Assembly: GCA_964035545.1 (NCBI GenBank)
Contig: OZ037770.1
Span: 14,002,642 to 14,066,641 of the forward strand
Length of the DNA stretch: 64,000 bases
DNA from: Bugula neritina
Taxonomy: Eukaryota > Animalia > Bryozoa
Reading direction: 5' to 3'
The notes under the pieces were generated by a model. That model saw nothing but the letters and a program-made list of their open reading frames with translations. It made no database searches and was not told where the DNA came from. Position numbers and translations under genes: made by a program. Of the stretch, positions 319 through 61,319 are shown piece after piece; the stretch's first letter is position 1, and every line of letters starts with the position of its first letter.

Positions 319-2121
319 TTATGGTACAATTCTGGGAGGTACTCTGTAAAATATAAAAATAAACTCAGTCTTCAACTTTAAACTCAACTTTAATTTATAT
401 GTTTAGATTAAAAAAAAATTCAATCAAGTTAAAAATATGTTGTAAAACAAAAATTGTTCGTTGTAATATGTATTTGAAAACTCAAACCGTTAACTGTAAG
501 CTTTCAGCAAACTTTTGATTAATTATAAGTAGCTTGAAAAAAATGTTGGCAATACCTATATTTATTATTTAACTAACTGTTTATTTATATGCTTAAACCT
601 ACTCATTTACTTATTTCTAAGATATTCATTGCATACAACGTCAATCTTATATATCTAAAATTTTGAAAACACTCTGTAGTATGAAAAATAAAATCTATAA
701 TGCAACACGTAAATATTCTACAGTAATAATATTAATTCGTAATATCTTAAATTCATATCTCTCTGACGCAGCTACATGCAGGCTTCAAAGAATAGCATAA
801 AATAAAATTTGCATGTAGCAAAACTGTAGGAAATTCTTATTATAAAAAAATGTAAGACATCTATATATAGCTGTTTATTTATAACTAAGTGGGTATACAC
901 TCACTGTATGCCTGTAACGCAGTACTTGGTGGTAGAATAGGGAGAAGTACAGCAGACGTCAGGTGCAGCACAATCAGCTTTACTTTCACAACCTGGGTTA
1001 TACTTAGGTCCAAATGGTTCCTGAGAGTTGGGGCATCTTCTGGTAAGTCTCACTCCGTTAGTCACTGTGTTCAGTATAATAAGTAGAATTAGGCTAATGA
1101 TATTACTTCTTCGTTTTTTAGTAGTTTTGGTACAGCTATACGTTTTGAGTTTTTATTTTTTTAGTCAATTAGTTAAATACTTTCACCATATGTTCAAAAA
1201 TTGTTTTATATTCATCCAGTATACAGTGTTTTTAATTTACAATAGTATGAACTGCCTCCCCAATTTTGTTTTATATTTGTTGAGTATAATATATACTATG
1301 TTGATAACAATAGTTGCAATATTAGGAGTTGTCTTCTCAATAATAATTATGTGTTTATAAACTATAACTCACCACAGAGGGAGGTGACAGGGCAGCCCCC
1401 ACTAGTTCTATATCCATCCTTACAGAACTTAGTGAAGTCTGCTGTTGGACAATCGACTAAAAAGATATGCATTACTCAAGTATTAAAGAATTTCAGTTGA
1501 GTATATAATATTATATAATGAAATGTGATTTTTATTTATTGATCTATTTAAGTTTTATATTTTTATTGTGTTTTTTTATATTTACTCGACGCTTTTAGTG
1601 ATATTTTTATTAAAACTAAACCAGTTTATAGTCAACTTACCACACTGGCAGTCCTGTTTCTCACAGCCACATGAATCCTTGACATAGCCTTTGGGACAAG
1701 AGTAAGGTGTGTCTCCAGGAAAGTAGGATCCACATTGGCTAGTAGGACATGGGTGGGGGCAGTGGGGGAGAGATGCTGATAAAAAATATTACAGCTACTG
1801 TATATTGTAATCTAAAGCTTCAAAGCTTGAAAAAACTTTGTTGGGAAAAGTGAGTATAGGGTTTTATTCTAATATAACACAGATCACAACAAAAAAATGT
1901 ACAATAAAATTTGTATATATAAAGTTAGGCTCTAAATAATACAAAACTGAGCTAATGGTAGTTGTGTTTATGTAAAATAATTCAATTTTTATGAATTATC
2001 ATGTAGATACCAAAAACGGCAGCCATTTTGATCACTCATAATAAAAATGAAATATTTTATTTTGCTACTCACCTGAACAAACAGCCAGAACTGCAAAGAA
2101 AGTAATGATGAGAGTATTCAT
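319..2121 (-). CDS. Paralogue A1: secreted Cys-rich protein (signal peptide, two antistasin-like modules, WAP-like module), 150 aa, 5 exons
   Basis: Exons (minus) 2121-2073, 1775-1641, 1456-1373, 1064-905, 343-319; all GT-AG, intron phases 1,1,1,2; 453 nt open. MNTLIITFFAVLAVCSASLPHCPHPCPTSQCGSYFPGDTPYSCPKGYVKDSCGCEKQDCQCVDCPTADFTKFCKDGYRTSGGCPVTSLCVTNGVRLTRRCPNSQEPFGPKYNPGCESKADCAAPDVCCTSPYSTTKYCVTGIQVPPRIVP*. Domain names are inferred from Cys spacing. Confidence 0.9.
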
Positions 2122-2204: not shown

Positions 2205-4071
2205 ATGTTGTTTAAATCATTTGTTGTGAAATTCAATATTTTTATTTTTAGTCAACAAAACTCATGCAGTGTTTCCAGGAACGCAGATATGATATAATTA
2301 TAACTAGCTGCACTGCCAACAAATATATTCAGGTGTCTTTATAATTTCCTGAACTCCAATATTCTGGTACCACACCATAATTATAGTACTCAATAATTGT
2401 TTAAATTAACATGCATTAAAGTTTGACTCAGCAAATTTAAATTGCGTAAAATAAAAGTGTTTAATTATAAGCCTAACAGTGTTACATATATCTTGCAACA
2501 TATAATAATAATATGACTTTATGGAGTTTTTGGACTAAATCAAAGCATATATTTAAAACTCAGAATTTGAATTTATATTCTTTGTTGTCCATCAAATGTA
2601 TTCATAAAGAGAACTTACATTAAAAAAGCTTCTATATTTGTAAAATAGTTTGACACGGCATTTGTGCTTTTGATGGTTTGTTATTTTAGTTACATTAGAC
2701 ATGCAACTATAGGAATAATTCGCAAAAAAGGCCTTTATAAATTTGATTTTCTGGCTAATAATAGCTTTGCATTTAAAAAAGTGTAGTGATTTTCACTTGA
2801 ATTGTCATAAGTAAAATCTGATCAAAAAAACATGCAGTTTGAAAGCAAAATTGTTTCTCCAATTTCTGCGATAAGCTTTGGCATTGGAATATATTGATGT
2901 AAAATAATTGCTATTTTAATATATTATCATTATAACTTTAGTTTGTTAGTACACATTTTCTGATAATGATGCTGTCAGCAGCATTATTATAAATGACGAG
3001 TTATTTCATCTCACAGGTTTAATAAGGTAGTGATACTTTCCTGTTTTACATAGCTGATTAAAGTTAAATTTGTTCAAATGTTATTTCAAGCTTCCAATTA
3101 TTATGGCTTACAATTAGTTCAGTTATTATAAAATCAAAGATGTCACTAATTCAAAAATTGTAACAAATGGATACATTTTTATAAAATATTGGGGCAAATA
3201 AGTTTATATATGCTATGTTTGCTTAAAAATATGTTGCAAGTCTATACTGGATGTGTATTATACAGCTCTATAAAAAACAGCATCATAGTTTATATTTTAT
3301 AATTTCTTGTTTTAAAACATAATTATAATGATGACATTCATCATGTTTGATTTTTACTTGAAATACATTTGTTTTTGGCCATTCCTCATATGTGTTCATA
3401 TCTTCAGTATAATGATGAAGCATCGCTACTGACAATGTTGTCCCAAATCCTGTACGTGGAAAGGCACATCCTTGTATACTCATATATAATATTAAAATAT
3501 CACATGTTTTCAATAGCCAATCAAGTGTAAAAAGTTCTAAATTGCATGATTTCTATACCGCATTATTTCTCTAATTTTAGCGTACAGAGTGGTATGCATA
3601 TGTGCACAGCATAAATAATTAGTATGGCATTTTTGCATTTGTTTTTGAAAAATATAAATGTTTCATAACTGTGAATATAAAGCTATTTTGTTGTGCAATG
3701 AGTTTTGTAACCAACATACAGTAGAACATTTTGAACATCTTGAAAAAAGAAAATATGTGTGTGTGTTGCTAAGAAATAAGATGATTTAACCTTTGACCCT
3801 GAAATGTGTGATTAGGCTACAATAGTGCTTTTTTATTATTATGAAATAAATAAATTATTAAGTAAATATTATTGAATTAAAAAAATATTGCAAGGAATGC
3901 AGAACGAGTTTGCAACTGGAACTATAAACTAACAATTCATTCGTCTATTGAAATGCATATTGTAAAAAATTGACTTTTCTTAAGTTTATAAGCTATGCAG
4001 AAAGCATGCAAGTTATATATACTTGCTTAATAAATAAAATCCACTAAAACAGCCTTATCAACATAACAAAA

Positions 4072-4240
4072 TACACACACATACACACACACACAAACAC
4101 ACACACACACACACCACACCACACCACACCACACCACATGCATGCACCACACCACACCACACCACACCACACCACACGCACACGCACACGCACACGCACA
4201 CGCACACGCACACGCGCACACACACACACACACACACACA
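4072..4240. repeat. Compound microsatellite (CA)n/(CACAC)n/(CACGCA)n
   Basis: Directly visible; explains the spurious ORFs at 4027-4392. Confidence 0.95.
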
Positions 4241-5913
4241 AATACGCATGCATTTATACACACATGTATGTATATATAATACTTAATATAATCTACATGT
4301 CCACACTCCATGTTTTGCAATGTGTCAACTTTTTTCACAACAGTGACATGTCAATATGTAAAACTCATGTTTTTTGGCAAGTTGTCACTTGAAGGCATGT
4401 AATCATACCAGGTGTCACATAGATCAATGTTATACCAACCTAGAATGTTGTAATGGTACTAGATTATGGCACTACACACAGAGTGATTGCAATACATAAA
4501 CAACAATAACATATACAGTATCCTCATAGCTGTATCTTTACGTAACTGTACCCGAATCTTGACATGTTTATGAAAGTTCCTCAATCAATTCGAGACAAGT
4601 CCAGCTTGTTTTGAAAGTAATTTTACAATATTATTGAAAATTTAGAATAACAAATTATCTATTAGCTATTCATAACCTTGTATGCATTATATTTCAATAA
4701 ACCAAACCTATAATACTCATGATACAATAATCTCTATAAATAAAAACTGAATATATCATTAATATGAGATGTCAAAAACATTATATAGTATTCAATTGCA
4801 TAAACTTATATAAGCATTTATAAAATTTATTTCATTTTATAAAATCTTCGGTTTGAAACTATTGTTCAACATTCTATTATAAATACAGTCAGTTAATAAT
4901 AATTAAACAAATATCATTAAATTATTATGTATCAAATAAATTCAACAATATTTTTCTAATATAAGCTATATGTTTAGTATAGCTGTGAACATAAAATGTG
5001 AAAATATAGAATACCCACTATATCATTCTAAAAGTACAATTCTATTATTATACTTTTCAGTTCGATGAATGACTAGTTTTATTGAACTCAAGCTAGTGCT
5101 AAGCATTCTCACTCAGGTGTTATTATTATATGAGACTAATTTAGACTAGTTTTTAACTATGCAGGCTTAATTTATATATAGTGGCAAAACAAATCTATAA
5201 CATAAACTATATTACGCTATATATTACGCTTTATTAGTTAAAAGCATATAGATATGAGCTACTATAATGATATATATAACCTTGTTCTTTGGCTAGCGAG
5301 GGGACAATTCCTAAAGCAGTGCATATATCTTATACGTAGCTGCTAAATCATACTAAAAAAGTATTGTGTCATATTGAGCAGGTACCCAACACAGTTGCAA
5401 ATATACAGAAATTATCATAATTATTTTAAGCTGTTATTATTTTGCAAAATTTGTAATTCACTGCATAGACTTGAACTATACTTGCATACCTTTTAAATCT
5501 ATAGTAGCAATATTTCTATTACAAAACTTCGAGTTGTGTCACTAGGTCTTGCAAAAATGAAAAGGCAAAACATTTGATGTTAGATGTCTACATGATTTTA
5601 TATTTGCCAACTTAAAAAGATTTGCACATATCTTAGTGTCACTATAAAACTATATAATATATACTCTTTTAATTTACTGATGCCTATAAACTAACACCAG
5701 GATTACGATTATTGTACTAATTATTAAACAATATACAGTATATAACAAGAGAGTCATGTTAAACAAGAGCTTACCAAAATATTTAAATATATTTGTTGGC
5801 AATATGCAGCGAATATGTTACTGCAGTGTTCCTGGTATTTTTAGTATATTGCCTGATTTTGTTTCACTGAAAATCAAATCATGGAATTTCACAACAAAAA
5901 ATTTAAACAACAT

Positions 5914-5996: not shown

Positions 5997-8457
5997 ATGA
6001 ATACTCTCATCATCACTTTCTTTGCAGTTCTGGCTGTTTGTTCAGGTGAGTAGCAAAATAAAATATTCCATTTTTATTATGGGTGATCAAAATGGCTGCT
6101 ATCTTTGGTAGCTACATGATAATTCATAAAAATTGAATTACTTTACATAAACACAACTACCATTATCTCAGTTTTGCATTATTAAAAGCCTAGCTTTGTT
6201 ATATATAAGAGTTTTATAGTACATTTCTTTGTTGTGATCTGTGTTATATTAGAATAAAACTATAATAATACTCACTTTTCCCAACAAAGGTTTTTCAAGC
6301 TTTGAAGCTTTAGATTACAACATAAAGAAGCTCTAATATTTTTTATCAGCATCTCTCCCCCACTGCCCCCACCCATGTCCTACTAGCCAATGTGGATCCT
6401 ACTTCCCTGGAAACACACCATACTCTTGTCCATGCGGCTATGTCAAGGATGCATGTGGCTGTGAGAAACAGGACTGCCAGTGTGGTAAGTTGACTATAAA
6501 CTAGTCTAACTTGTGTATATTCAAATTGCTTGATTGATTGCAACGAAATGGCAACTGTGAAACAGATTTGTAAGGTTACGAGTTTACAGGAAAGCTTCAA
6601 AGTAATGTGCCCTTCTGAGTTTGCTTTTTAAATTTATTGCCGGACATTTGAGTATTTTCTTACGGCTTTTCTACTGAATTTATTTACGTATAGTTATAAA
6701 ACTGCTAAGTTGGTGAAGTCAATTCATTTACTTATCTAGGTATATGATCTTTTAATGATTAGTTATTATACAAAACAGGAATCAGCTTTAAGTTTTTGTT
6801 TATAAATATTATCTGATTTATATTAGACTTTTTCATAAAAGCTCATGAAAAATTATAAAAACTGAACATAATTACGTTTTATTAATTGATAACTATATTA
6901 TGTAATCATGCAACATAAAAGTAGCTATAATTAAAACAATATTTCATATTTTCTATTGAATGCCAAATTTACCAACCTATTGTTTTACCAAAGCATCGAT
7001 ATAAATTTACAAAACATTTCAGGAAATACATAACAGTATAATATGTACAACGTATAAAGCAATGGATAAACATCAAATTTAAATATAATATAATACATGC
7101 GTGTAATATTATATACTCAACTGAAAATCTTTAATAATTGAGTAATGTATTTCTTTTTAGTCGATTGTCCAGCAGCAGACTTCACTAAGTTCTGTAAGGA
7201 TGGATATAGAACTAGTGGGGGCTGTCCCGTCACCTCCCTCTGTGGTGAGTTATAGTTTATAAACACATATTTAATATTGGGGAGATAATTAATAATATTG
7301 TGACTATATTAGTATCAACATACATTATATATACAGAACAAATATAAAGACAATATATTGTACAATTATTAAAAGGTAAACTAAATGATTAGAGCTAAAT
7401 ATTCAAACATGCTAATTTTTTTTCTGAATAACTTAAACCGGCAGATTTTTTAGTTTGAATTCAGAAGATGACACATGATGGTGTGACTTTCATATTGTCA
7501 AAGTATTTATGATGAGCAAATGTAGAACAAATATTGTACCATCATTAAAAAGAAAACTAAACGTTTAGAATTACTCGTAAATATTCAAAACATGTATATA
7601 TAGTTGTATCAAAATTATTAAGAAAGCATAAAGTGTAATAATTAGTCTAATTCTACTTATCATATTGAACACAGTGAGTAATGGGGTGAGACTTACCAGA
7701 AGATGCCCCAACTCTCAGGAACCATTTGGACCTAAGTATAACCCAGGTTGTAGAAGTAAAGCTGATTGTGCTGCACCTGATGTTTGTTGTACTTCACCCT
7801 ATTCTACCACCAAGTACTGCGTTAAAGGAGAAGTGTAAGTATTTAAAGCAAAAATAAAAAAGTAACCCTATATAAAAAAGATTTTCTTACAACATTTTCG
7901 CTTAGATATTATTATAATAACTGCTTTTTATATAAATTCTCTTTAAGGCCTATGCATGTATAGCTATTATAAGTATATTATAAGCAACACTGTCACCAGC
8001 AAGTAAATGGTTTATGTTACAGCGTATCTCTTATATAATATCATCTCTTATATAATATCGTCAAGCTTTTCAAATTTTGAATATATAACATTTTAATTGA
8101 CTTTGCAATGAAGGTTTTAAAAATAAGTAAGCTAATAAGTGTACATGTACTCAAGTGTAAATGAACAGGTGACAAATTAATAATAATTGGGTAATATGTC
8201 GCACAAATTTGAACGCATTTTATTTCAATATAACTGATAAATTACAATCTGCCTATTATAGATGTAACAGCTAGACGTTTACAATTACTGCTACAGTAGT
8301 ATAATCTGTTTGTTATATTTGACAATTTTTTAGCTTGAAAGCGTCTTTTGAAATTTAAACAAATATAATGAATTATAGTTGAGTTTTCAATAAATATCCT
8401 ACAAACTAATTCATTTGTATTTTTTACAGAGTACCTCCACTAAACCCACACTACTAG
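5997..8457 (+). CDS. Paralogue A2: secreted Cys-rich protein, 151 aa, 5 exons, with an extra Cys (CPCG)
   Basis: Exons 5997-6045, 6350-6484, 7161-7244, 7675-7834, 8430-8457; GT-AG; 456 nt open. MNTLIITFFAVLAVCSASLPHCPHPCPTSQCGSYFPGNTPYSCPCGYVKDACGCEKQDCQCVDCPAADFTKFCKDGYRTSGGCPVTSLCVSNGVRLTRRCPNSQEPFGPKYNPGCRSKADCAAPDVCCTSPYSTTKYCVKGEVVPPLNPHY*. Confidence 0.9.
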
Positions 8458-13409: not shown

Positions 13410-15849
13410 ATGAATACTCTCATCATTACTTTCTTTGCAGTTCTGGCTGTTTGTTCAGGTGAGTAACAAAATAAAATATTCCATTTTAATTATGGGTGAT
13501 CAAAATGGCTACCATTTTTGATAGCTATGAATAATTAATAAAAATTGAATTATTTTACGAAAACACCACTGCCATTAGCTCAGTTTTGCATTATTAAAAG
13601 CCTAGCTTTATATATATAAGAGCTTAATAGCATACATTTCTTTGTTGTAATCTGTGCTATATATTAGAATAAAACCAAAATTTCCCCCCTTAAAAAAAAA
13701 AAAGGTTTTTCAAGCTTTGAAGCTTTAGATTATAATATACAGTAGCTCTAATATTTTTTATCAGCATCTCTCCCCCACTGCCCCCACCCATGTCCTACTA
13801 GCCAATGTGGATCCTACTTCCCTGGAAACACACCTTACTCTTGTCCATGCGGCTATGTCAAGGATGACTGTGGCTGTGAGAAACAGGACTGTCAGTGTGG
13901 TAAGTTGACTATAAACTAGTCTAACTTGTGCATATTCAAATTGCTTGATTGATTTCAACAAAATGGCAACTGTGAGACAGATTTGTGAGCTTTCGAGCTT
14001 ACAGAAAAGTTTTAACGTGGTTTTCTGAGTTTGCTTTCTAAATTTATTGCTCAACATTTAAGTATTGTCTTTAGGGTTTTCTATATACTGAATTTATTTA
14101 TGTAGTTACAAAACTGCTAAACTTGGTGAAGTCAATTTATTTACTTATCTATAGGTATATGATTTTTTAATAATTAGTTATTATACAAAAACAGGATCGG
14201 TCAGCTTCAAGTTTTTGTTTATAAATATTATCTGCAAGTTATATTAGACTTTTCCATAAAAGCTCATAAAAAATTATAAAAACTGAACATAATAATTTTT
14301 TATTAATTGATAACTATATTATGTAATCATGCAACATAAAAGTAGCATAGCACAATATTTCATATTTTCTATTGAATGCCAAATTTACCAACCTATTGTT
14401 TTATCAAAGCATCAATATAAATTTACAAAAAATTTCGGGGAAATACATAACAGTATAATATGTACAACGTATAAAGCAATGGATAAACATCAAATTTAAA
14501 TATAATATAATACATGCATATAATATTATATAATCAACTGAAAGTCTTTGATACTTGAGTAATGTATATCTTTCTAGTCGATTGTCCAGCAGCAGACTTC
14601 ACTAAGTTCTGTAAGGATGGATATAGAACTAGTGGGGGCTGTCCCGTCACCTCTCTCTGTGGTGAGTTATAGTTTATAAACACATAATTAATTTTGGGAA
14701 GACAATTAATAATATTGTGACTATCAGTGTCAACACACATTATATATACAGAACAAATATAAAGACAATATATTGTACAACTATTAAAAGGTAAACTAAA
14801 TGATTAGAGCTAAATATTCAAAACATGCTAATTTTTTTCTGAATAACTTAAACTGACAATTTTTTTAGTTTGAATTCGGAAGATGACACATGATGGTGTG
14901 ACTTTCATTGTCAAAGTATTTATGATGAGCAAATGTAGAACAAATATTGTACCATCATTAAAAAGAAAACTAAATATTTAGAATTACTTGTAAATATTCA
15001 AAACATGTATATAGTTGTATCAAAATTATTAAGAAAGCATAAAGTGTAATAATTAGTCTAATTCTACTTATCATATTGAACACAGTGAGTAACGGAGTGA
15101 GACTCACTAGGAGATGCCCCAACTCTCAGGAACCATTTGGACCTAAGTATAACCCAGGTTGTAGAAGTAAAGCTGATTGTGCTGCACCTGATGTGTGCTG
15201 TACTTCACCCTATTCTACCACCAAGTACTGCGTTAAAGGAGAAGTGTAAGTATTTAAAGCAAAAATAAAAGAGTAACCAAGATAAAAACAATTTTCTTAC
15301 AACTTTGTTAATTGCTTGGATATTATCATAATAACTGCTTTTTATATAAATTCTCTTTAAGGCCTATGCATGTATAGCTATTATAAGTATAATTATTATT
15401 AGCAACACTGTTACCAGCAAGTAAATGATTTATGTTACAGCATATCTCTTATATAATATGGTAAAGCTTTTCAAATTTTAAATATATAACATTTCAATTG
15501 ACTTTGCACTGAATATTTTAAAAATAAGTAAGCTAATAAGTGTACATGTACTCAAGTGTAAATGAACAGGTGACAAAATAATAATTGGGCAATATGTCGC
15601 ACAAATTTGAACGCATTTTATTTCAATATAACTTTGATAAATTACAATCTGCCTATAGATGTAACTGCTAGACATTTACAATTACTGCTGCAGTAGTACA
15701 ATCAGTTTGTTATATTTGACAATCTTTTAACTCGAAAGGGTCTTTTGAAATTAAACAAATAAATTATAGTTGAGTTTTCAATGAATATCTTACAAACTAA
15801 TTCCATTTGTGTATTTTACAGAGTACCTCCACTAAACCCACACTACTAG
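13410..15849 (+). CDS. Paralogue A3: secreted Cys-rich protein, 151 aa, 5 exons, with an extra Cys (CPCG)
   Basis: Exons 13410-13458, 13765-13899, 14578-14661, 15086-15245, 15822-15849; GT-AG; protein as A2 except KDDC in place of KDAC. Confidence 0.9.
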
Positions 15850-20114: not shown

Positions 20115-22333
20115 ATGAATACTCTCATCATTACTTTCTTTGCAGTTCTAGCTGTTTGTTCAGGTGAGTAGCAAAAGGAATTACAAAAGTCTTTTTTTAT
20201 TATGAGAATGACCGCTAATTTTGATAACTAAAGCTCATAAATATAAAATTATTTTATTAGAGCACAACTACTATAAGCTCAATTTTGTATTATGTTATTA
20301 CAATCTTAAGTTAACTAAATTTCATAATTAATGCCTTTATTTGTTTTGATATGCATTATATTAAAATACAACCAATTATATATTTATTATTTGCCACAAT
20401 GGCTTTTTACATTTGTAAAATTTAGATTATAAGATTGTACAAATTGTCATTTTTTATCAGCATCTCTCCCTCACTGCCCCCACCCATGTCCTACTAGTCA
20501 ATGTGGATCCTACTTCCCTGGTAACACACCATACTCTTGTCCCAAAGGCTATGTCAAGGATGACTGTGGCTGTGAGAAACAGGATTGTCAGTGTGGTAAG
20601 TTGGCTGAAAACTATAGTCTAACATGTGTATATAATATTCAAATTGTTTGATTGCAACGATAAATGGCAGCTGTGAAATCAATTGATCAGCTTACCCTCA
20701 CAGAAAATTTTCAACATACCTGTTTGAGTTTAGTTTCTAAATTAATTGTTTTACATTTAAGTAATGCCTTAAACTGTATTGCTGTAGCAAGTGTTTTATA
20801 TAACTACAACATAAAACTTCTAAAATTATTTCAGGCATCCAATTTACTTAATTATTAATATATAAAATTACTTTAAATTCTTAAAATATGGAAAAGCACC
20901 TAAAACTTACAAAGCGATGAATTATAAGTATGCATCAAATTTAGTTATTATGATATATGCAAAAGAAAAGTATTTATTATTGAGTATTTAATCTTTCTTC
21001 AGTCGATTGTCCAACAGCAGACTTCACTAAGTTCTGTAAGGATGGATATAGAACTAGTGGGGGCTGTCCCGTCACTTCCCTCTGTGGTGAGTAGTTTATT
21101 ACCTATTGGGAAGACAACTTACAGTATTGCGATTATCCTTTTCAAAAGTTTATATACTCAAAAAAAAATTGCAGAATTATTAAAACGTAAACTAAACAAT
21201 TAGAATTAAATATACATGAGGTTGTATCAAAATTGATACAAAAACATGAAGTACACTAAATAGCCTAATTCTACTTATCATGCATTATTGAACATAGTGA
21301 GTAATGGAGTGAGACTCACTAGAAGATGCCCCAACTCTCAGGAACCATTTGGACCTAAGTATAACCCAGGTTGTAGAAGTAAAGCTGATTGTGCTGCACC
21401 TGATGTGTGCTGTGCTGCCCCCTATTCTACTACAATGTACTGCGTTAAAGGAGAAGTGTAAGTATACTTACTACTGTATATATACAGTAAATATAAAATG
21501 TAGTTCTATATAAAAAAAATACAACTTTTCATCTTTTATATTATTATCATAATAATTGTTTTTATATATTTTTTATAATGCCTACATGTAGCTGTTAGGG
21601 AGGTGTAAATAAGGTCCTGTATTAAATTGGCAATGCTGTCATCAGCAAGGAAATTTGGTATATATGTTACAGCCTATATTTTATATTATATATATAGTAA
21701 AACTTACTCATGATGCATGTTTATATAGTCACCATCCCGGTGAGAAACCCCTGATGGAAAGGGTTTTTGTTAAGGAGGGCTAAGGACTTATTTAAATAAG
21801 GCACAAGAGCCTGGATGCTCTTCCTAACAATCACCAAATGGCCTTTGTTCGGGTTCGCACCCATGACCCTGTGATTACTAGGCAAACGCTCTAACTCCTA
21901 GACCCCAGCTGATCTCTTTATATATTATAGTAACGATTTTCAAAACTTATGTATATATATTATTTTAATTGACTTTGCAATGAATATCTTAGAAATACAA
22001 GTAAATAAATGAGTGTACATATGTTCAGGTAGAAATTAACAGCAAATAAAGTAATAATTAGACAATATGTTGCACAAATTTGAATGCAATTTAGTTTAAA
22101 AAAACCTTATTTATTGGATCATACTTTCATTTTGTCTATTATAGCTGCTGCTTTCAAATATTTACAATTATCGCTGCAGTTGCACAATCAAGTGTTTGAT
22201 AACTCTCATCAATTATATGTGCTTCTCAAATTTAAACCTATGACTTATTATATTTAACTTTGGAATGAATCTTCTACAAATTAATTTCATTCGTGTATTT
22301 TACAGAGTACCCCCGCTAAACCCACACTACTAG
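20115..22333 (+). CDS. Paralogue A4: secreted Cys-rich protein, 151 aa, 5 exons
   Basis: Exons 20115-20163, 20461-20595, 21003-21086, 21298-21457, 22306-22333; GT-AG; variants CPKGYVKDDC and DVCCAAPYSTTMYC; ends VVPPLNPHY*. Confidence 0.9.
21701..21916 (-). mobile_element. tRNA-derived SINE in intron 4 of A4
   Basis: Reverse complement aligns over ~200 bp with the copy at 30988-31199; A-box-like GGGGTCTAGGAG and B-box-like GGTGCGAACCC; absent from the homologous intron of A2/A3. Confidence 0.85.
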
Positions 22334-23689: not shown

Positions 23690-25257
23690 TTAATGAGCTC
23701 TACAAATATGAACAAATTTATTATAAATATATAAAAAAAATTGATGAAGCATGCAATAGCACTTGTCAGAAACCCGTAGTGTTTAATTTTAACTTGTGTG
23801 TTGATAAAGTTATATTCACCTGACTTCAATGCCATCAACACATCTCATGCCACTCTTGCCGTATACTTTACAGCAATTTCTTCCTGCAGGACCACACTGC
23901 CTGTCATTTGTGCACGTGTAAGAGCTTGGGTTATTGGCTGGCTCATTCAGGTTTGGGCATCTGTACTGAATCTCTACACCACTTGTTACTGGAAAGTCAT
24001 ATAAATATGCAAAGTGAAATGGCAGATGAAAATATGACGGCATTATACAGTATTATTAAATATACAACTAATATACTAGCTATAACATATTGGTAACTCT
24101 AGTATATATTTTAATATATTACTTACCACAAAAGTATGCATTTGGACAACCACCCTGTGTTCTATATCCATCTCTACAAAATCTCGTGTAGTCAGTTGGG
24201 GGACATCCAACTAAAATCATACAGAAAATACAATATTTTAAATGGAAAGATTAAAATGTTACATTGTAAAGTAAGGGTTTATGCACCATATTATCTTACA
24301 GCTATAATTTGGTAATATAACTATTACAATGACTATATAGACTGCAGTCAACTTACAACACTGGCAGTCCTGTTTCTCGCAGCCACATGAATCCTTGACA
24401 TAGCCGTTGGGGCAGGAGTAAGGTGTGTTACCAGGGAAGTAGGATCCACATCTACTGGTAGGACATGGGTGAGGACAGTGAGGGCGAGATGCTAAAACAA
24501 AACAAGCTTCCTAAAATACATCACCTTAAAATATAATTTTTCTTGTTAAACTGGTGACTATTATTCTTTTTAAAACATATTTCCCCTGACATTTTCAAAA
24601 TAGTGTATATGTTTAAAGTATTTAAACAAGACACAGACACTTGAGTTGACAGCTGCTCAAATTCTCAAATAAACACCTCATGAAATTTTATGATTCAAAA
24701 CTATAAATTGTACCTTTTTGGTATTTTCTAAGTGTGAAAAATGTTTTTTCTACTACTAATTGTCAATAGAAGACAATTACCATGTGTAACTTAAAGCTTT
24801 ATAACTAAAAGTGTGTTTAAATAGTTGTTACTGTGCCAGCACGGATGCTGAATGGCACAGTTGCAATTCACTTGATGAAGGGTGAATGGATGGAGGACAC
24901 AACTCAACCTTTTGCCTAATACGCCAACATTTTATATATTTCTCACAAAACTGTGAGAATTGTTTGAACAATAAAGTTTAAGTTGCCTGCATCTTTAACA
25001 AGAAGAAAATTAAGCTCTACTGACTCATCAAACAAAAGCTACCAGCAAAAAGCTATTGCTAAAGCTTTCACAAAAAGCTTTCATCAAACAATATTTTACT
25101 TGAATTGCTATATAGATCAAAAAGTTCCTGCAAAAAAGATTAATTATAAAACCCAGACTTTATTTCATAAACAAAATTTGTTATATATATACTTACCTTC
25201 AGTGAGGACTGCGAAAGCAGCTAGAAAAGCAAAAGCTGTGATAGCGAAGGTGTTCAT
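23690..25257 (-). CDS. Paralogue B1: secreted Cys-rich protein, 152 aa, 5 exons
   Basis: Exons (minus) 25257-25197, 24491-24357, 24210-24127, 23988-23820, 23699-23690; GT-AG; 459 nt open. MNTFAITAFAFLAAFAVLTEASRPHCPHPCPTSRCGSYFPGNTPYSCPNGYVKDSCGCEKQDCQCFGCPPTDYTRFCRDGYRTQGGCPNAYFCVTSGVEIQYRCPNLNEPANNPSSYTCTNDRQCGPAGRNCCKVYGKSGMRCVDGIEVRAH*. The tiny exon 5 is inferred from B2/B3. Confidence 0.88.
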
Positions 25258-30452: not shown

Positions 30453-32198
30453 ATGATGAATACTTTTGCTTTGACAGCTTTTACTTTTCTAGCTGCTTGT
30501 GCAGCTTACACAGAGGGTGAGTGAATATTTATTTTCTTTATTTTTATTAGAAATAAAATCACTATGGAAACTTATTTTACTGTTTAACACATGAGCTATT
30601 TTTTCTTGTAGGCAGTAATCTTGATATTATATAATTATATAAATAATATTTCATTATATTAAAAAATAATTTTTTATTATATACAAGAAATATGTTACTA
30701 TGATATACAATTTTATTTAAATTTAATGTTTTCATTTGTCATACTGTTTCAATGATTGATCCAACCTCACTAAAAATTCATTTGAGTTGAAATTATTGTT
30801 AATTTTTACTGATGCCTATATATATTCCATTGAACTTATAAGTACTTTCACATGTCCATTAAATCTGTTATAGCTATTTTTGTAAATTATTGAAAATATT
30901 TTTTTAATCTTGCAAGTTTTGATCTGTTATAAATTCTATTAAAAATATTAGTAAACTAATTACGAAATATTTCATAAGAATTGAATAGGGAGCAGCCGTG
31001 GTCTAGGGGTTAGAGCGTTTGCCTAGTAAACACGAAGGTCATTGGTTCGAGCACAGAAAAGGCCATTGGTGATGTTAGGAAGAGCATCCAGTCATAATTG
31101 CTCCTGTGACTCATTTAAATAAGTCCTTAGCCCGCTTTAACAAAAACCCTTTCTATCAGGGGTTCTCACAGAGATAGTGACTATAAAATTGCGAGAGTTT
31201 ATTTCATAAGCATTAAATACACTGCTTGAAGAAACATATAAACTAGTTTTACAAAAAATATTTTTGTGTATGCACACAACAATTAATCAGAAGAAATCTT
31301 ATATTTCATGATAATGCATGCCTATATATATATAGCTAATTGGTTTTAGCATCTCGCCCTCATTGCCCTCACCCATGTCCCACCAGTAGATGTGGATCTT
31401 ACTTCCCTGGTAACACACCTTACTCTTGCCCCAACGGCTATGTCAAGGATTCATGTGGCTGCGAGAAACAGGACTGCCAGTGTTGTAAGTTGGTTATTAA
31501 TTTGTCTCTATTTGTTGATTAAAGCTGTATGATAAAATGATTAAAGTGTGTAAATCCTGTGACAATTTATATATCTAAAAATCTATAAACATACAGGTAT
31601 ATAAGAAATATATGAGACACTTTCTATATCTAAATTACTGTATTTTCTGTATGATTTTAGTTGGATGTCCCCCAACTGACTACACGAGATTTTGTAGAGA
31701 TGGATATAGGACACAGGGAGGCTGTCCAAATGCATACTTTTGCGGTTAGTAATATACTCAAATATACTAGATTTACCAATATATTATAGCTTGTAGTTGT
31801 ATTTAAGAATTATTACTGTATATATTATGCAGTCATATTTTCATCTGCTGTATATCACTCTGCATATTTACATGGTTTTCCAGTAACAAATGGTGTAGAG
31901 ATTCAGTACAGATGCCCAAACCTGAATGAGCCAGCCAATAACCCAAGTTCTTACACGTGCACAAATGACAGGCAGTGTGGTCCTGCAGGAAGAAATTGCT
32001 GTAAAGTATACGGCAAGAGTGGCATGAGATGTGTTGATGGCATTGAGATCAGGTGAGCAGCTATAGATGGATATAGATACATGCAAAAGTAAAAAATTAA
32101 TTACAATATATCTGTATATAGCAGACTTTTATAGATGTTGTCACTTTCTATTGTCTATTATTAGAAAATAAATTGATGTTTATTGTAGGACTCACTAA
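30453..32198 (+). CDS. Paralogue B2: secreted Cys-rich protein, 153 aa, 5 exons
   Basis: Exons 30453-30516, 31350-31484, 31661-31744, 31884-32052, 32189-32198; GT-AG; MMNTFALTAFTFLAACAAYTEASRPHCPHPC...CTNDRQCGPAGRNCCKVYGKSGMRCVDGIEIRTH*. Confidence 0.9.
30988..31199 (+). mobile_element. tRNA-derived SINE in intron 1 of B2, with a ~20-bp target-site duplication
   Basis: A box TGGTCTAGGGG, B box GGTTCGAGC; flanked by tatttcataagaattgaata (30968-30987) and tatttcataagcattaaata (31200-31219); empty site in B3 intron 1 at ~60256-60275. Confidence 0.9.
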
Positions 32199-44075: not shown

Positions 44076-47036
44076 ATGATCCATTAAAATAGAACTAATA
44101 AAGCCAACGACGTTAATGGTATGTCTAACTAATCATGGCATGTCTCGTCTGGCAGTGGGTATGTGGAGGGCCAGGCAACCTACGGCCGTCAACCCGTTAA
44201 TGGCACAACTAGAAGAAGATACTCAAGAGAAGACAACAAAGTCGTCATGAAATGCTGCTTCAAAAGTACACCCAAATTGAGAGGTTATAGAAAAACAATG
44301 TATGAGCTCTGTAGACCCGGATCAAAGAATTATTTAAAAAGAATGTGCAAACGCTGGAAAACAGAGGAGAGTTTAACATCAGCGAACAGAGACTAGCGGA
44401 TTAAGCAAGAACTATGAAGAAACACAAGCATTTTATGGAAGAAGAACTCCATAAGATTGAAGAAGGAACCTTGCAAGAACTAGGCACATCAATTGGTGAA
44501 GAAGATAATGAAGAGCTAAATTTGCAAATAGAGGATGTTATAGTACAACATGAGATAGCATATAAATCAGCCATGAGAATTTTAAGAGTACCTAGTTCAG
44601 AGGTAGAAAAAGTGTTAGTAGAAAAATTATAAATGAGCATAACAAACTATCTAATGATCGACCAACACTAAGAGCCCTTAGGCACATTGAGAGGGTCAAA
44701 TTACTACAGGCAGTAAAACAGATTAATGATGTGCTAAACTGTGTTGAGATTATTAATACCATTGAGCTTAATAACACCACCATGGCTTGTGCGAAAAATA
44801 GTAACAGAACAAGTGTGTAACAAAAAGGAAAAAGAAAAACTGACAATGTACAAGTATGGAAAATACGACTGCAGAAGAAATAAAAAGAAATTAGATCAGA
44901 CTTAAGTAAAATAGCAGAGTGAAAAAGTAGAGCTTACAATGATTCATTGAGAAGAATGGTTGAAGAAAAATATAGGATAAAGAACAAAGAGTGTGGTGTA
45001 GTGATTGAAAAACTGAAGCAAAACCTGAGAGCTGTAAGCCAGAAGATAAACAGATATACAGAATGAGTTGATCAATATAATCAGAACACAATGTTTACAA
45101 TGATAAGCGCTTTTATCAAGAATTACGAGGAAATGAATACGTACATCTAAAGAGGCACCTGACAAGGAAATCAAAAGCATTCTGATAAAATATATGGGGT
45201 CAGCCAACTAAAAATAATACCAATGCAGAATGACTAAATAAAGTTAGCAACAAATTGGAGCATATGTAAAGACAAGGAAATTAGATCTTAGAAACGATGC
45301 AAACAACTGGAATAGCAATTAATGTCATAAGGTTGATAAGAAAAAGCATGAAACCTGGAAAACACAACTGAAATACCTGGAAGAAAAGATAGGAGAAATA
45401 AAGATCAAACTAAGAATTTTCCAAGGAGACTCTTTATCTCTATCCCTTTTCTCCAACTACCGATTCGCATGACAGAAGCGGCTCAATGATGCAAATTTCG
45501 ACGAGACAGAAAACAAACCATCACCTATATGTGGATGACCTGAAGGTAAATAGGAAATTAAAGTGGGAACTGGAAGCTTTGGTAAACACTGCCGGGATCT
45601 TCACAAGGAATATAGAAATGAAATTTGGATTAAAAAATGTGCCACACTGGTTATGAGAAAGGGAAAGAAAATTAAGGACACAGGAATCAGTTTGCCTGAT
45701 GAACAGGTAATCAAAGATCTGAGTGAGAAGCCGTATAAATATCTAGGAGTTCTTGAGATTGATGGAATACAAATATATGAAATGAAAAATAAGATCAAGG
45801 AGTACTACAAACAAATAAGAAAAGTTCTGGATTCAAAACTGAATGGTGAGAACACAATCAAAGCAATAAACACATGGGCAGTAACAGCAGTGCATTACAC
45901 AGCTAGAATACTTGACTGAACTGTTTCATGAGCTAAAAAATATGGACTGAAAGACAAGGAAGCTAATGACAACAAACCGTGCACCCTATCCGAGAGCAGA
46001 TGTAGGCAGGCTGTATTTTAGCAGAAGGGAAGGCGGTAGAAGAATGTTGTCAACTGAAAAATGCATAAAGATTGAAAACTGCAGCATGTCAGACTACATA
46101 AATATAACATAGACTGATAGAAACACCACACTGAATACCTTCCTAAAAGACAGAACAGCGGTAGAACTAAATAATGATAAAGTGATAGAAAGAACTGATG
46201 AGTGTAAAGAAAAGCTTCCTGTGGTAAATACATCAAAATGGTGGAAGACATGAAAGCATTTTCCTGGAACTGGTTGAAGTATGGTTGGCTGAAAAAGGAA
46301 ACAGAAGGACTGCTGACAGCTGCGCAAAATCAACTATTCACTACTAGAAATTATAAAGTGGCTATGATGAGAGAACAGGGTAGCAAGAAGTGTGGAATGT
46401 GTAACGCAAGAGACAAAACTTCGATGCACGTATTGAGTGAGTTTGAGAAGGTAGCAGAAGGAGAATATAAGAAAAAACACAACCTTTTGGCATTGATAAT
46501 TTCAATAGTAGTTGTGTGAACTTGGTGAGTTTCAGAAAAGTAAGAATTGGTACGGCCATCAAGCAGAATAAGTACTGGAAAATGATAATGTGAAAACCTT
46601 GTAAGATTTTAACATACACACTGACGTAGTCATCAAAGTTAGGAGACCCGATATATTAGTAGTTGACAAGCATAATGCTGAAACAACGATAATTGATATC
46701 ACAGTCCCTGTTAACTACAGAGTAAAAGAAAAAAATTCGAAAAGTTAGGAAAATATCAGAATTTAGCACTAGAATAAACCCGCCTTTGGAAAACATCAAA
46801 AAAGTCATCCCGTTGTAACTGGAGCCTTTGGAGCTTTATACAAGATTGTAGACTGGCTGACACTACTTGGAGTAGCTGAAAACAAATGCTCATTAATTCA
46901 GCAGACACCCTTACTAGGATCAGGATAAGCTCACATCCTGAGGAAAGTTCTATCCATTTCAGCCTAGTATAACTAGGCCAATGGTAAAAGGTTACACCAG
47001 CTAAAAAACTACGGTCAATCAACAATAATAATAATA
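44076..47036 (+). mobile_element. Decayed non-LTR retrotransposon with C-terminal restriction-like endonuclease (R4/Dong-like)
   Basis: Ordered motif remnants: RGYRK and SEQRLAD (N-terminal), IFQGDSLS, HLYVDDLK, YKYLG, KAINTWAV, REGGR, ETEGLLTAAQNQ..TRN, CGMC..H (CCHC), RPDILVVDK..IIDITVP..KYQNLA (PD-(D/E)xK). Many stops and frameshifts; the early RT region appears deleted; (TAA)n runs at both flanks. Confidence 0.9.

Positions 47037-59756: not shown

Positions 59757-61319
<1,563 letters not shown>

Follow-up and report, generated by a model that had tools for sequence, protein, structure and literature searches.

Altered protease-binding loops in a tandem family of antistasin- and WAP-like genes of the bryozoan Bugula neritina

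Small disulfide-rich inhibitor scaffolds are a classic case of reuse, both in evolution and in peptide engineering. Inhibition by the standard mechanism needs a short loop braced by flanking disulfides, and in the WAP domains of elafin and SLPI, where the cysteines pair 1-6, 2-7, 3-5 and 4-8, the P1 residue follows C2 (C1, C2 and so on denote cysteines in motif order; the same symbols followed by a colon, as in C2:5.725 Mb, are genome coordinates). Antistasin-type inhibitors carry P1 directly after C2, in a C2-C3 loop of 2-3 residues. Their cysteines pair 5-8, 6-9 and 7-10 in hirustasin numbering (PMC6265900), so that the six-cysteine motif pairs 1-4, 2-5 and 3-6 and C2 has C5 as its partner. 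For the WAP scaffold, the crustins and waprins provide a precedent for a non-inhibitory, antimicrobial use (PMC9680087). We analyzed a stretch of 64,000 nucleotides of Bugula neritina DNA (assembly GCA_964035545.1, contig OZ037770.1, positions 14,002,642 to 14,066,641; hereafter the window) and, within it, a four-exon gene at 5997-7838 (+) that encodes a signal peptide followed by three Cys-rich modules, one module per exon. The family to which this gene belongs is a derived branch of the antistasin/WAP inhibitor genes that is transcribed and kept by selection, and the binding loop of each of its modules is altered; the loop of module 1 has been enlarged into a conserved Gly/Pro/Tyr-rich motif, and the loops of modules 2 and 3 have been unstapled.

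Gene structure and loop changes at 5997-7838

The window has the base composition of AT-rich eukaryotic DNA (~29% G+C), and the three introns of the gene are all GT..AG and in phase 1. Exon 1 (5997..6045), whose sequence is identical across four paralogues, supplies the start codon and a hydrophobic signal peptide of 16-17 residues (MNTLIITFFAVLAVCS) and ends in phase 1. Exon 2 (6350..6484) encodes an antistasin-type module with the six motif cysteines and extras, exon 3 (7161..7244) a reduced antistasin-type module of 27 residues with four cysteines, and exon 4 (7675..7838) a WAP-type module with six cysteines, followed by the stop codon at 7836-7838. Contigs of X1, an RNA sequencing (RNA-seq) run recorded as a metagenomic RNA library and kept as contigs, sit on all four exons, with almost none in the introns, and their loose ends and joints give the three splice joins 6045 to 6350, 6484 to 7161 and 7244 to 7675. 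The first join comes from a contig that links exon 1 to exon 2 (loose end at 6346), the second from a contig with two paralogue-type mismatches, and in the third the sequence after 7244 is exon-4-like. Since the X1 contigs reproduce these three joins, the gene is spliced and transcribed as modelled. At window position 7834, two X1 contigs continue past the last codons with a different sequence in place of the stop codon, and these probably represent a paralogue or an allele with another C-terminus.

The yardstick for comparison was the genome's own set of canonical antistasin and WAP domains; at least 21 Antistasin (PF02822) and at least 54 WAP (PF00095) domains exceed the Pfam gathering cut-offs of 21.2 and 20.8 bits, respectively. 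The cysteines of exon 2 follow the pattern C-x3-C-x4-C-x11-C-x8-C-x-C-x4-C-x-C. In a MAFFT alignment with 17 canonical antistasin domains, the module kept all of C1-C6 (6/6 of the six-Cys subdomain, plus two or three extra cysteines) as well as the motif CP-x-G-[FY]-x-x-D-x-x-G-C, insertions lengthened it by 8 residues between C2 and C3 and by 2 residues between C4 and C5, and it had two extra cysteines, one before C1 and one two residues ahead of C4. Instead of the 2-3 residues of an antistasin reactive loop, the C2-C3 loop thus has 11 residues, GSYFPGNTPYS in this gene and GSYFPG[N/D]TPYS among the copies, with Gly at the position directly after C2 that P1 occupies in antistasin. Across the aligned family the loop consensus is G-x-[FLY]-x-P-G-x-T-P-Y-x, with Gly or Ala after C2. 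A preliminary description of this DNA had given module 1 an 11-residue loop and one extra pair of cysteines; the loop length was exact, and the extra pair holds as the family pattern of eight cysteines, but not for this copy, which has nine. The ninth cysteine is present in two window copies, A2 (the gene studied here) and A3 (exon 13767-13898), where it lies within the CP-x-GY motif (codons 6433-6435 and 13848-13850), and its position is taken by Lys or Asn in the five other window copies. This odd, unpaired cysteine could form an intermolecular disulfide.

The cysteine pattern of exon 3 is C-x4-F-x3-C-x9-C-x5-C, and in the MAFFT alignment with the canonical antistasin domains four of the six motif cysteines (C1, C3, C4 and C6) were kept, the C2 column being occupied by F and the C5 column by another non-Cys residue; a short loop with P1 after C2 is accordingly absent. 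The loss of C2 and C5 had been reported before and is seen in the alignment, but the F or Y that was described at the lost C2 is confined to the window copies; elsewhere in the family the residue is S, M, R, A or N. Exon 4 has the pattern C-x14-C-x5-C-x5-CC-x9-C. When it was aligned with WAP domains from this genome (31 sequences in the alignment), C1, C3, C4, C5, C6 and C8 were invariant, these six columns being common to exon 4 and 24 other WAP domains, and the lack of C2 and C7 in exon 4, already noted earlier, was borne out: both are absent from 12/12 of the family WAP-type modules examined, which therefore lack the eight cysteines and four disulfides of a full WAP domain. The core spacing C3-x5-C4-x(4-6)-CC and the WAP fold are present in exon 4 by alignment, profile comparison and model. 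The elafin/SLPI-type inhibitory loop is not: there is no C2, and the loop starts with CPN[SL][QN]EP, which is conserved, and varies from there on. In each reduced module the missing cysteines are one disulfide pair, as had been proposed, namely C2-C7 by the established elafin/SLPI pairing in module 3 and C2-C5 by the pattern in PMC6265900 in module 2. The disulfide that staples the loop would thus be gone from both modules.

Descent of the modules from antistasin and WAP domains

The relationship of the modules to known domains was evident mainly from profile-profile comparison. With hhalign, the exon-2 family scored 95.1-95.7% against canonical antistasin (E 3e-8 to 1e-8), the exon-3 family 95.7-96.7% against canonical antistasin over the whole module (E 1e-8 to 4e-10), and the exon-4 family 80.6-83.6% against canonical WAP (E about 1e-5). 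Crossed controls, in which antistasin-type modules were compared with WAP and the reverse, gave 0.3-2.4%, and 0.5-2.4% for the antistasin-type modules against WAP. Canonical antistasin exons are also of phase 1-1, with the donor site right after the last Cys, and this common phase and donor position points to descent of the modules by exon duplication. In addition, canonical genes of the order antistasin-antistasin-WAP are numerous in the genome, for example at C3:29485370-29487107 and C3:28753726-28755516. The profile-profile scores, the alignments and the exon phases all agree with the earlier reading of the modules as antistasin, antistasin and WAP, and the alignments place the change in each module on the canonical binding loop, as that reading had claimed: at the C2-C3 loop in module 1, at C2/C5 in module 2 and at C2/C7 in module 3.

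Some canonical genes (L028 ~4164-4349 and 3259-3558, minus strand; L027 4469-4609) carry a second six-Cys module, C-x6-C-x4-C-x14-C-x2-C-x-C, with a Thr/Pro-rich loop, and this second module did not come up when the genome was scanned for Pfam Antistasin. Long (TG/CA)n microsatellites lie near canonical and family clusters (L027 1350-1670; L046 6374-6955).

Searches and structure models were run on one exon at a time. In a scan of 24,736 Pfam families with E up to 10, Antistasin was the sole family matched by exon 2, at 8.4-10.2 bits in three paralogues, and exon 2 of this copy had no Antistasin match; exon 3 matched no family; and WAP was the sole family matched by exon 4, at 15.1 bits here and at 20.2 bits, just under the cut-off, in the B-type copies described below. 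None of the window modules was among the matches of the genome-wide Antistasin scan. PDB profile searches with the three exon alignments returned chance matches only (P2X4, a zinc-finger protein, iNOS), with no antistasin or WAP chain. In the ESM Atlas, exon 2 had no usable match, and exon 4 matched WAP clusters only, all of them under the trust level. An AlphaFold2 (AF2) model of exon 4 reached a predicted local distance difference test score (pLDDT) of 82.9. With this model, VIA-align placed SLPI, nawaprin and omwaprin within the top four of 48,161 chains (Z 3.6-4.1), SLPI domain 2 superposing with Z 4.1 and a root-mean-square deviation of 2.0 Å over 37 residues, and Foldseek gave a non-specific list of knottins, Dkk4 and SLPI, all at E > 1.

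These results bear on the explanation that the Cys spacing is convergent and that the modules are other small disulfide-rich folds. The Pfam scores under threshold, the PDB profile searches, the Foldseek list with knottins beside SLPI for exon 4 and the low confidence of the exon-2 model would all suit convergence. Against it, the profile-profile scores are specific, with cross-controls below 3%; motifs outside the cysteines, namely CP-x-G-[FY]-x-x-D-x-x-G-C as well as C-x-x-D-x-C together with the CC doublet, are common to the modules and the canonical domains; the exons agree in phase and boundaries; and WAP structures stand at the top in VIA-align. Furthermore, the mosaic gene at C2:5723500-5729500 (L043) joins remodelled and canonical modules: its remodelled module 1, whose loop has 10 residues, occurs with one 4-Cys module, a further 6-Cys module, an antistasin domain that Pfam recognises and a WAP domain with six cysteines. 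Taken together, we consider convergence very unlikely and descent from antistasin and WAP domains the preferred reading. The mosaic gene is possibly an evolutionary intermediate.

Paralogues, selection and relatives

Seven intact copies of the gene, with conserved splice sites, occur in the window, four of type A and three of type B. Paralogue A1 (904..2121, minus strand) has the same four exons, with eight cysteines in exon 2 and GDTPYS in the loop; A2 (5997..7838, plus strand) is the gene studied here and, like A3 (13410..15249, plus strand), has nine cysteines in exon 2; and A4 (20115..21461, plus strand) is also of type A. The divergent B type is represented by B1 (23819..25257, minus strand), B2 (30456..32053, plus strand) and B3 (59760..61182, plus strand). 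A genome-wide search with the exon-2 profile gave 15 matches at three loci, nine on this contig (two of them just past the window end), five at C2:3.60-3.645 Mb and one at C2:5.725 Mb, so that the family has at least 15 copies in the genome. The gene L041 (C2:3616553-3619672, minus strand) appears to have five modules in the order 8-Cys (antistasin-like), 4-Cys, 8-Cys, 4-Cys, 6-Cys (WAP-like), encoded by phase-1 exons within ~2 kb; the Pfam Antistasin match is its first 4-Cys module, which scores 24.5 bits and so reaches the cut-off, and not its second. Elsewhere in the C2 cluster, at L045 4417-4548 and 9182-9313, genes end in an additional exon for another 6-Cys WAP-like module, which begins C-G-L-P-P-P. 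The window also contains, at ~45560-46520, open reading frames that resemble the decayed remains of a retroelement reverse transcriptase; G+C is raised there and the AT skew is strong.

Within the A and B types, the ratio of nonsynonymous to synonymous differences (pN/pS) was 0.16 in exon 2, 0.20 in exon 3 and 0.30 in exon 4; all three modules are under purifying selection. Exon 4 of A2 and exon 4 of A3 (at 15088) are separated by seven synonymous differences and yet encode one and the same peptide. Between the types, with A2 as the reference, protein identity was 89-91% in exon 2, 59% in exon 3 and 30-34% in exon 4, with B1 at about 91%, 59% and about 30%, and for exon 2 the synonymous divergence (dS) was 0.5-0.9 and the nonsynonymous divergence (dN) 0.04-0.09. 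Gene conversion was considered as a cause of the exon-2 conservation and is unlikely: between A and B copies, the introns on either side align over no more than ~10 bases, and the synonymous differences are many. The conservation is therefore confined to the exon and does not mark a recent conversion tract. The cysteine patterns themselves are not a product of chance, since they recur in the seven window paralogues and in at least 15 genome copies and are under purifying selection.

The enlarged loop was then compared with the reactive loops of canonical domains. Among nine non-redundant family members, pairwise identity (Cys excluded) was 0.50 in the loop versus 0.38 in the rest of the module; among 16 canonical antistasin domains of the genome, it was 0.13 in the C2-C3 loop versus 0.32 elsewhere. 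By this measure the expanded loop is more conserved than its scaffold, whereas the canonical reactive loops are hypervariable and form the most variable part of their domains.

Outside this genome, relatives were few. When 1.84 billion representative proteins were searched with the exon-2 profile, the true relatives numbered only three, and canonical antistasin proteins were absent at E <= 0.001. All three are exon-sized open reading frames on metagenome contigs. One of them, P0006, is nearly identical to a paralogue at the C2 locus and, because of this near identity, must come from the same or a sister species. A search for metagenome loci with P0006 gave nothing. Two Joint Genome Institute (JGI) metagenome contigs (L003 and L004) hold a copy almost identical to the C2 paralogue and represent host DNA of the same or a sister species and not an independent lineage. 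The GC-rich contigs L029 and L030, returned by a metagenome search with alignment A1, were rejected as unrelated, with only a His/Pro-rich word in common. An annelid origin of the DNA (a gutless oligochaete or a leech), at first suggested by the antistasin content, was dropped; the Hirudin family did not come up in the genome, but it did not come up in the control genomes either, so that its absence carries little weight. Overall, the family is tandemly expanded and was found only in this genome and a few metagenome contigs, and the design of module 1 looks restricted to a narrow lineage, in a phylum that is thinly represented in the database.

The copy number and the ninth cysteine also bear on another explanation, in which the proteins are structural or adhesive parts of a secreted matrix (cuticle, adhesive or mucus) and the Tyr/Pro/Gly-rich loop serves cross-linking or surface binding and not the recognition of microbes or enzymes. 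Antistasin-like and WAP-domain proteins have been described repeatedly from the shell matrix of molluscs, the adhesive mucus of limpets and the footprints of sea stars; the X1 contig depth is high (a weak measure) and the tandem copies are many; and the odd ninth Cys of two copies could make intermolecular bonds. On the other hand, the protein is small and globular, with no low-complexity repeats, and a literature search turned up no account of antistasin or WAP proteins from bryozoans. We regard such a structural or adhesive role as improbable.

Proposed role and comparison with known systems

Repurposing away from canonical inhibition is plausible for this family. In the proposed mechanism, the altered loops would no longer be the rigid, substrate-like reactive sites of standard-mechanism inhibitors, because the standard mechanism needs a short disulfide-braced loop and because the selective regime of the module-1 loop is opposite to that of canonical reactive loops. 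The protein would act instead as an extracellular binding protein, a role favoured because the loops would no longer serve as reactive sites. The conserved exon-2 loop would then be a constant contact surface and the fast-diverging, mildly cationic WAP-like module, with a net charge of about +4 in A-type copies by our count, a variable surface. Surface or microbe-directed defence, or protection of a secreted matrix, may be suggested as roles by way of speculation. We lean modestly towards this reading, that is, a derived inhibitor family whose loops have left the standard mechanism, with extracellular binding as its role.

Several observations weigh against it. The loop might just as well be conserved as the reactive site against a single endogenous protease that is itself conserved. 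No module of this copy reaches its Pfam gathering threshold. The exon-2 model is of poor quality (pLDDT 65.7) and was based on the copy with eight cysteines at 1642-1773; Foldseek matched it to guamerin alone, at a non-significant E = 7, and VIA-align of this model gave nothing at Z >= 2. Moreover, the alignments behind the exon-2 and exon-4 models held canonical domains, which biases both models toward those folds. Structure prediction, which had been suggested as a check, was thus in favour of a WAP fold for exon 4 but gave no comparable result for exon 2. The depth of X1 contigs is no measure of expression level. Finally, six-Cys WAP domains with neither C2 nor C7 are common in other genes of the genome, where they pass the Pfam threshold. 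The loss of C2/C7 is therefore a recurrent WAP variant in this genome; the loss that had been described for exon 4 stands, but it is less special than had been supposed, and the other C2/C7-less WAP domains may be inhibitory too.

The most direct competing explanation is that the proteins are still inhibitors, with the 11-residue loop or the loosened loops forming a new reactive site against a conserved protease, either the animal's own or a microbial one. By hhalign the scaffold descends from inhibitors, and its canonical relatives in the genome resemble working inhibitors with hypervariable P1 loops. A loop kept by purifying selection would suit a single conserved target, and many WAP and antistasin proteins of invertebrate secretions are described as inhibitors. 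However, the Gly or Ala after C2 would make a poor P1 for most serine proteases, and, from what is established about standard-mechanism inhibitors, an 11-residue loop with no short cystine brace, like loops that are unstapled, would misfit the rigid canonical conformation. Retained inhibition is accordingly an alternative that we take seriously but think unlikely. If the proteins are still inhibitory, the 11-residue loop would be a new reactive-site design.

The reading as extracellular binding proteins can be extended, though here we are doubtful, to a new functional class built on inhibitor scaffolds in bryozoans and their close relatives. Its members would be secreted for recognition or defence and would bind something other than a protease active site (for example microbial surfaces, chitin or matrix), exon 2 providing a constant epitope and the WAP-like module diversifying. 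In either form, a single gene combines three routes of dismantling a reactive loop, namely an insertion and, twice and in unrelated folds, removal of the disulfide that staples the loop; the scaffold itself remains under purifying selection, and unaltered canonical relatives in the same genome are available as internal controls. If non-inhibitory, the family would be a clean natural experiment on the conversion of standard-mechanism inhibitors into binding proteins and a first function-level handle on the secreted proteins of a poorly studied phylum.

Compared with the antistasin-type inhibitors (hirustasin, guamerin and antistasin; PF02822, MEROPS I15), modules 1 and 2 match the pattern C-x4-C ... 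C-P-x-G-[FY]-x-x-D-x-x-G-C-x-x-C-x-C. The differences lie in the loop of module 1, which is 11 residues long, conserved and accompanied by two extra cysteines where theirs has 2-3 residues, and in module 2, from which the C2-C5 disulfide (hirustasin 6-9, PMC6265900) is missing. Nor do these modules have a counterpart of the N-terminal four-Cys subdomain seen in the leech proteins. With the WAP four-disulfide-core domains (elafin, SLPI domain 2, nawaprin and omwaprin; PF00095), exon 4 has in common the CP start and the spacing C1-x14-C3-x5-C4-x5-C5C6; it differs in the lack of C2/C7, whose disulfide carries the P1 region in elafin and SLPI, and in the length of the C6-C8 segment, 9 residues versus ~7 in WAP domains.

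The canonical antistasin-antistasin-WAP genes of the genome have the same module order, one phase-1 exon per module and the same boundary after the last Cys. They have all of their cysteines and short hypervariable reactive loops, and the window family has neither. Other six-Cys WAP domains of the genome (the C9:1.93 Mb cluster, C6:0.24 Mb and C2:5.727 Mb) likewise lack C2/C7 but, unlike the exon 4 of the window, pass the Pfam WAP threshold; those at C9 and C6 adjoin eight-Cys WAP domains and not remodelled antistasin modules, and the one at C2:5.727 Mb belongs to the mosaic gene, where it stands beside remodelled antistasin modules. The crustins and waprins resemble the window family in being small and secreted, with a C-terminal WAP-type module after other Cys-rich modules; crustins, however, keep all eight WAP cysteines, whereas the window family has six.

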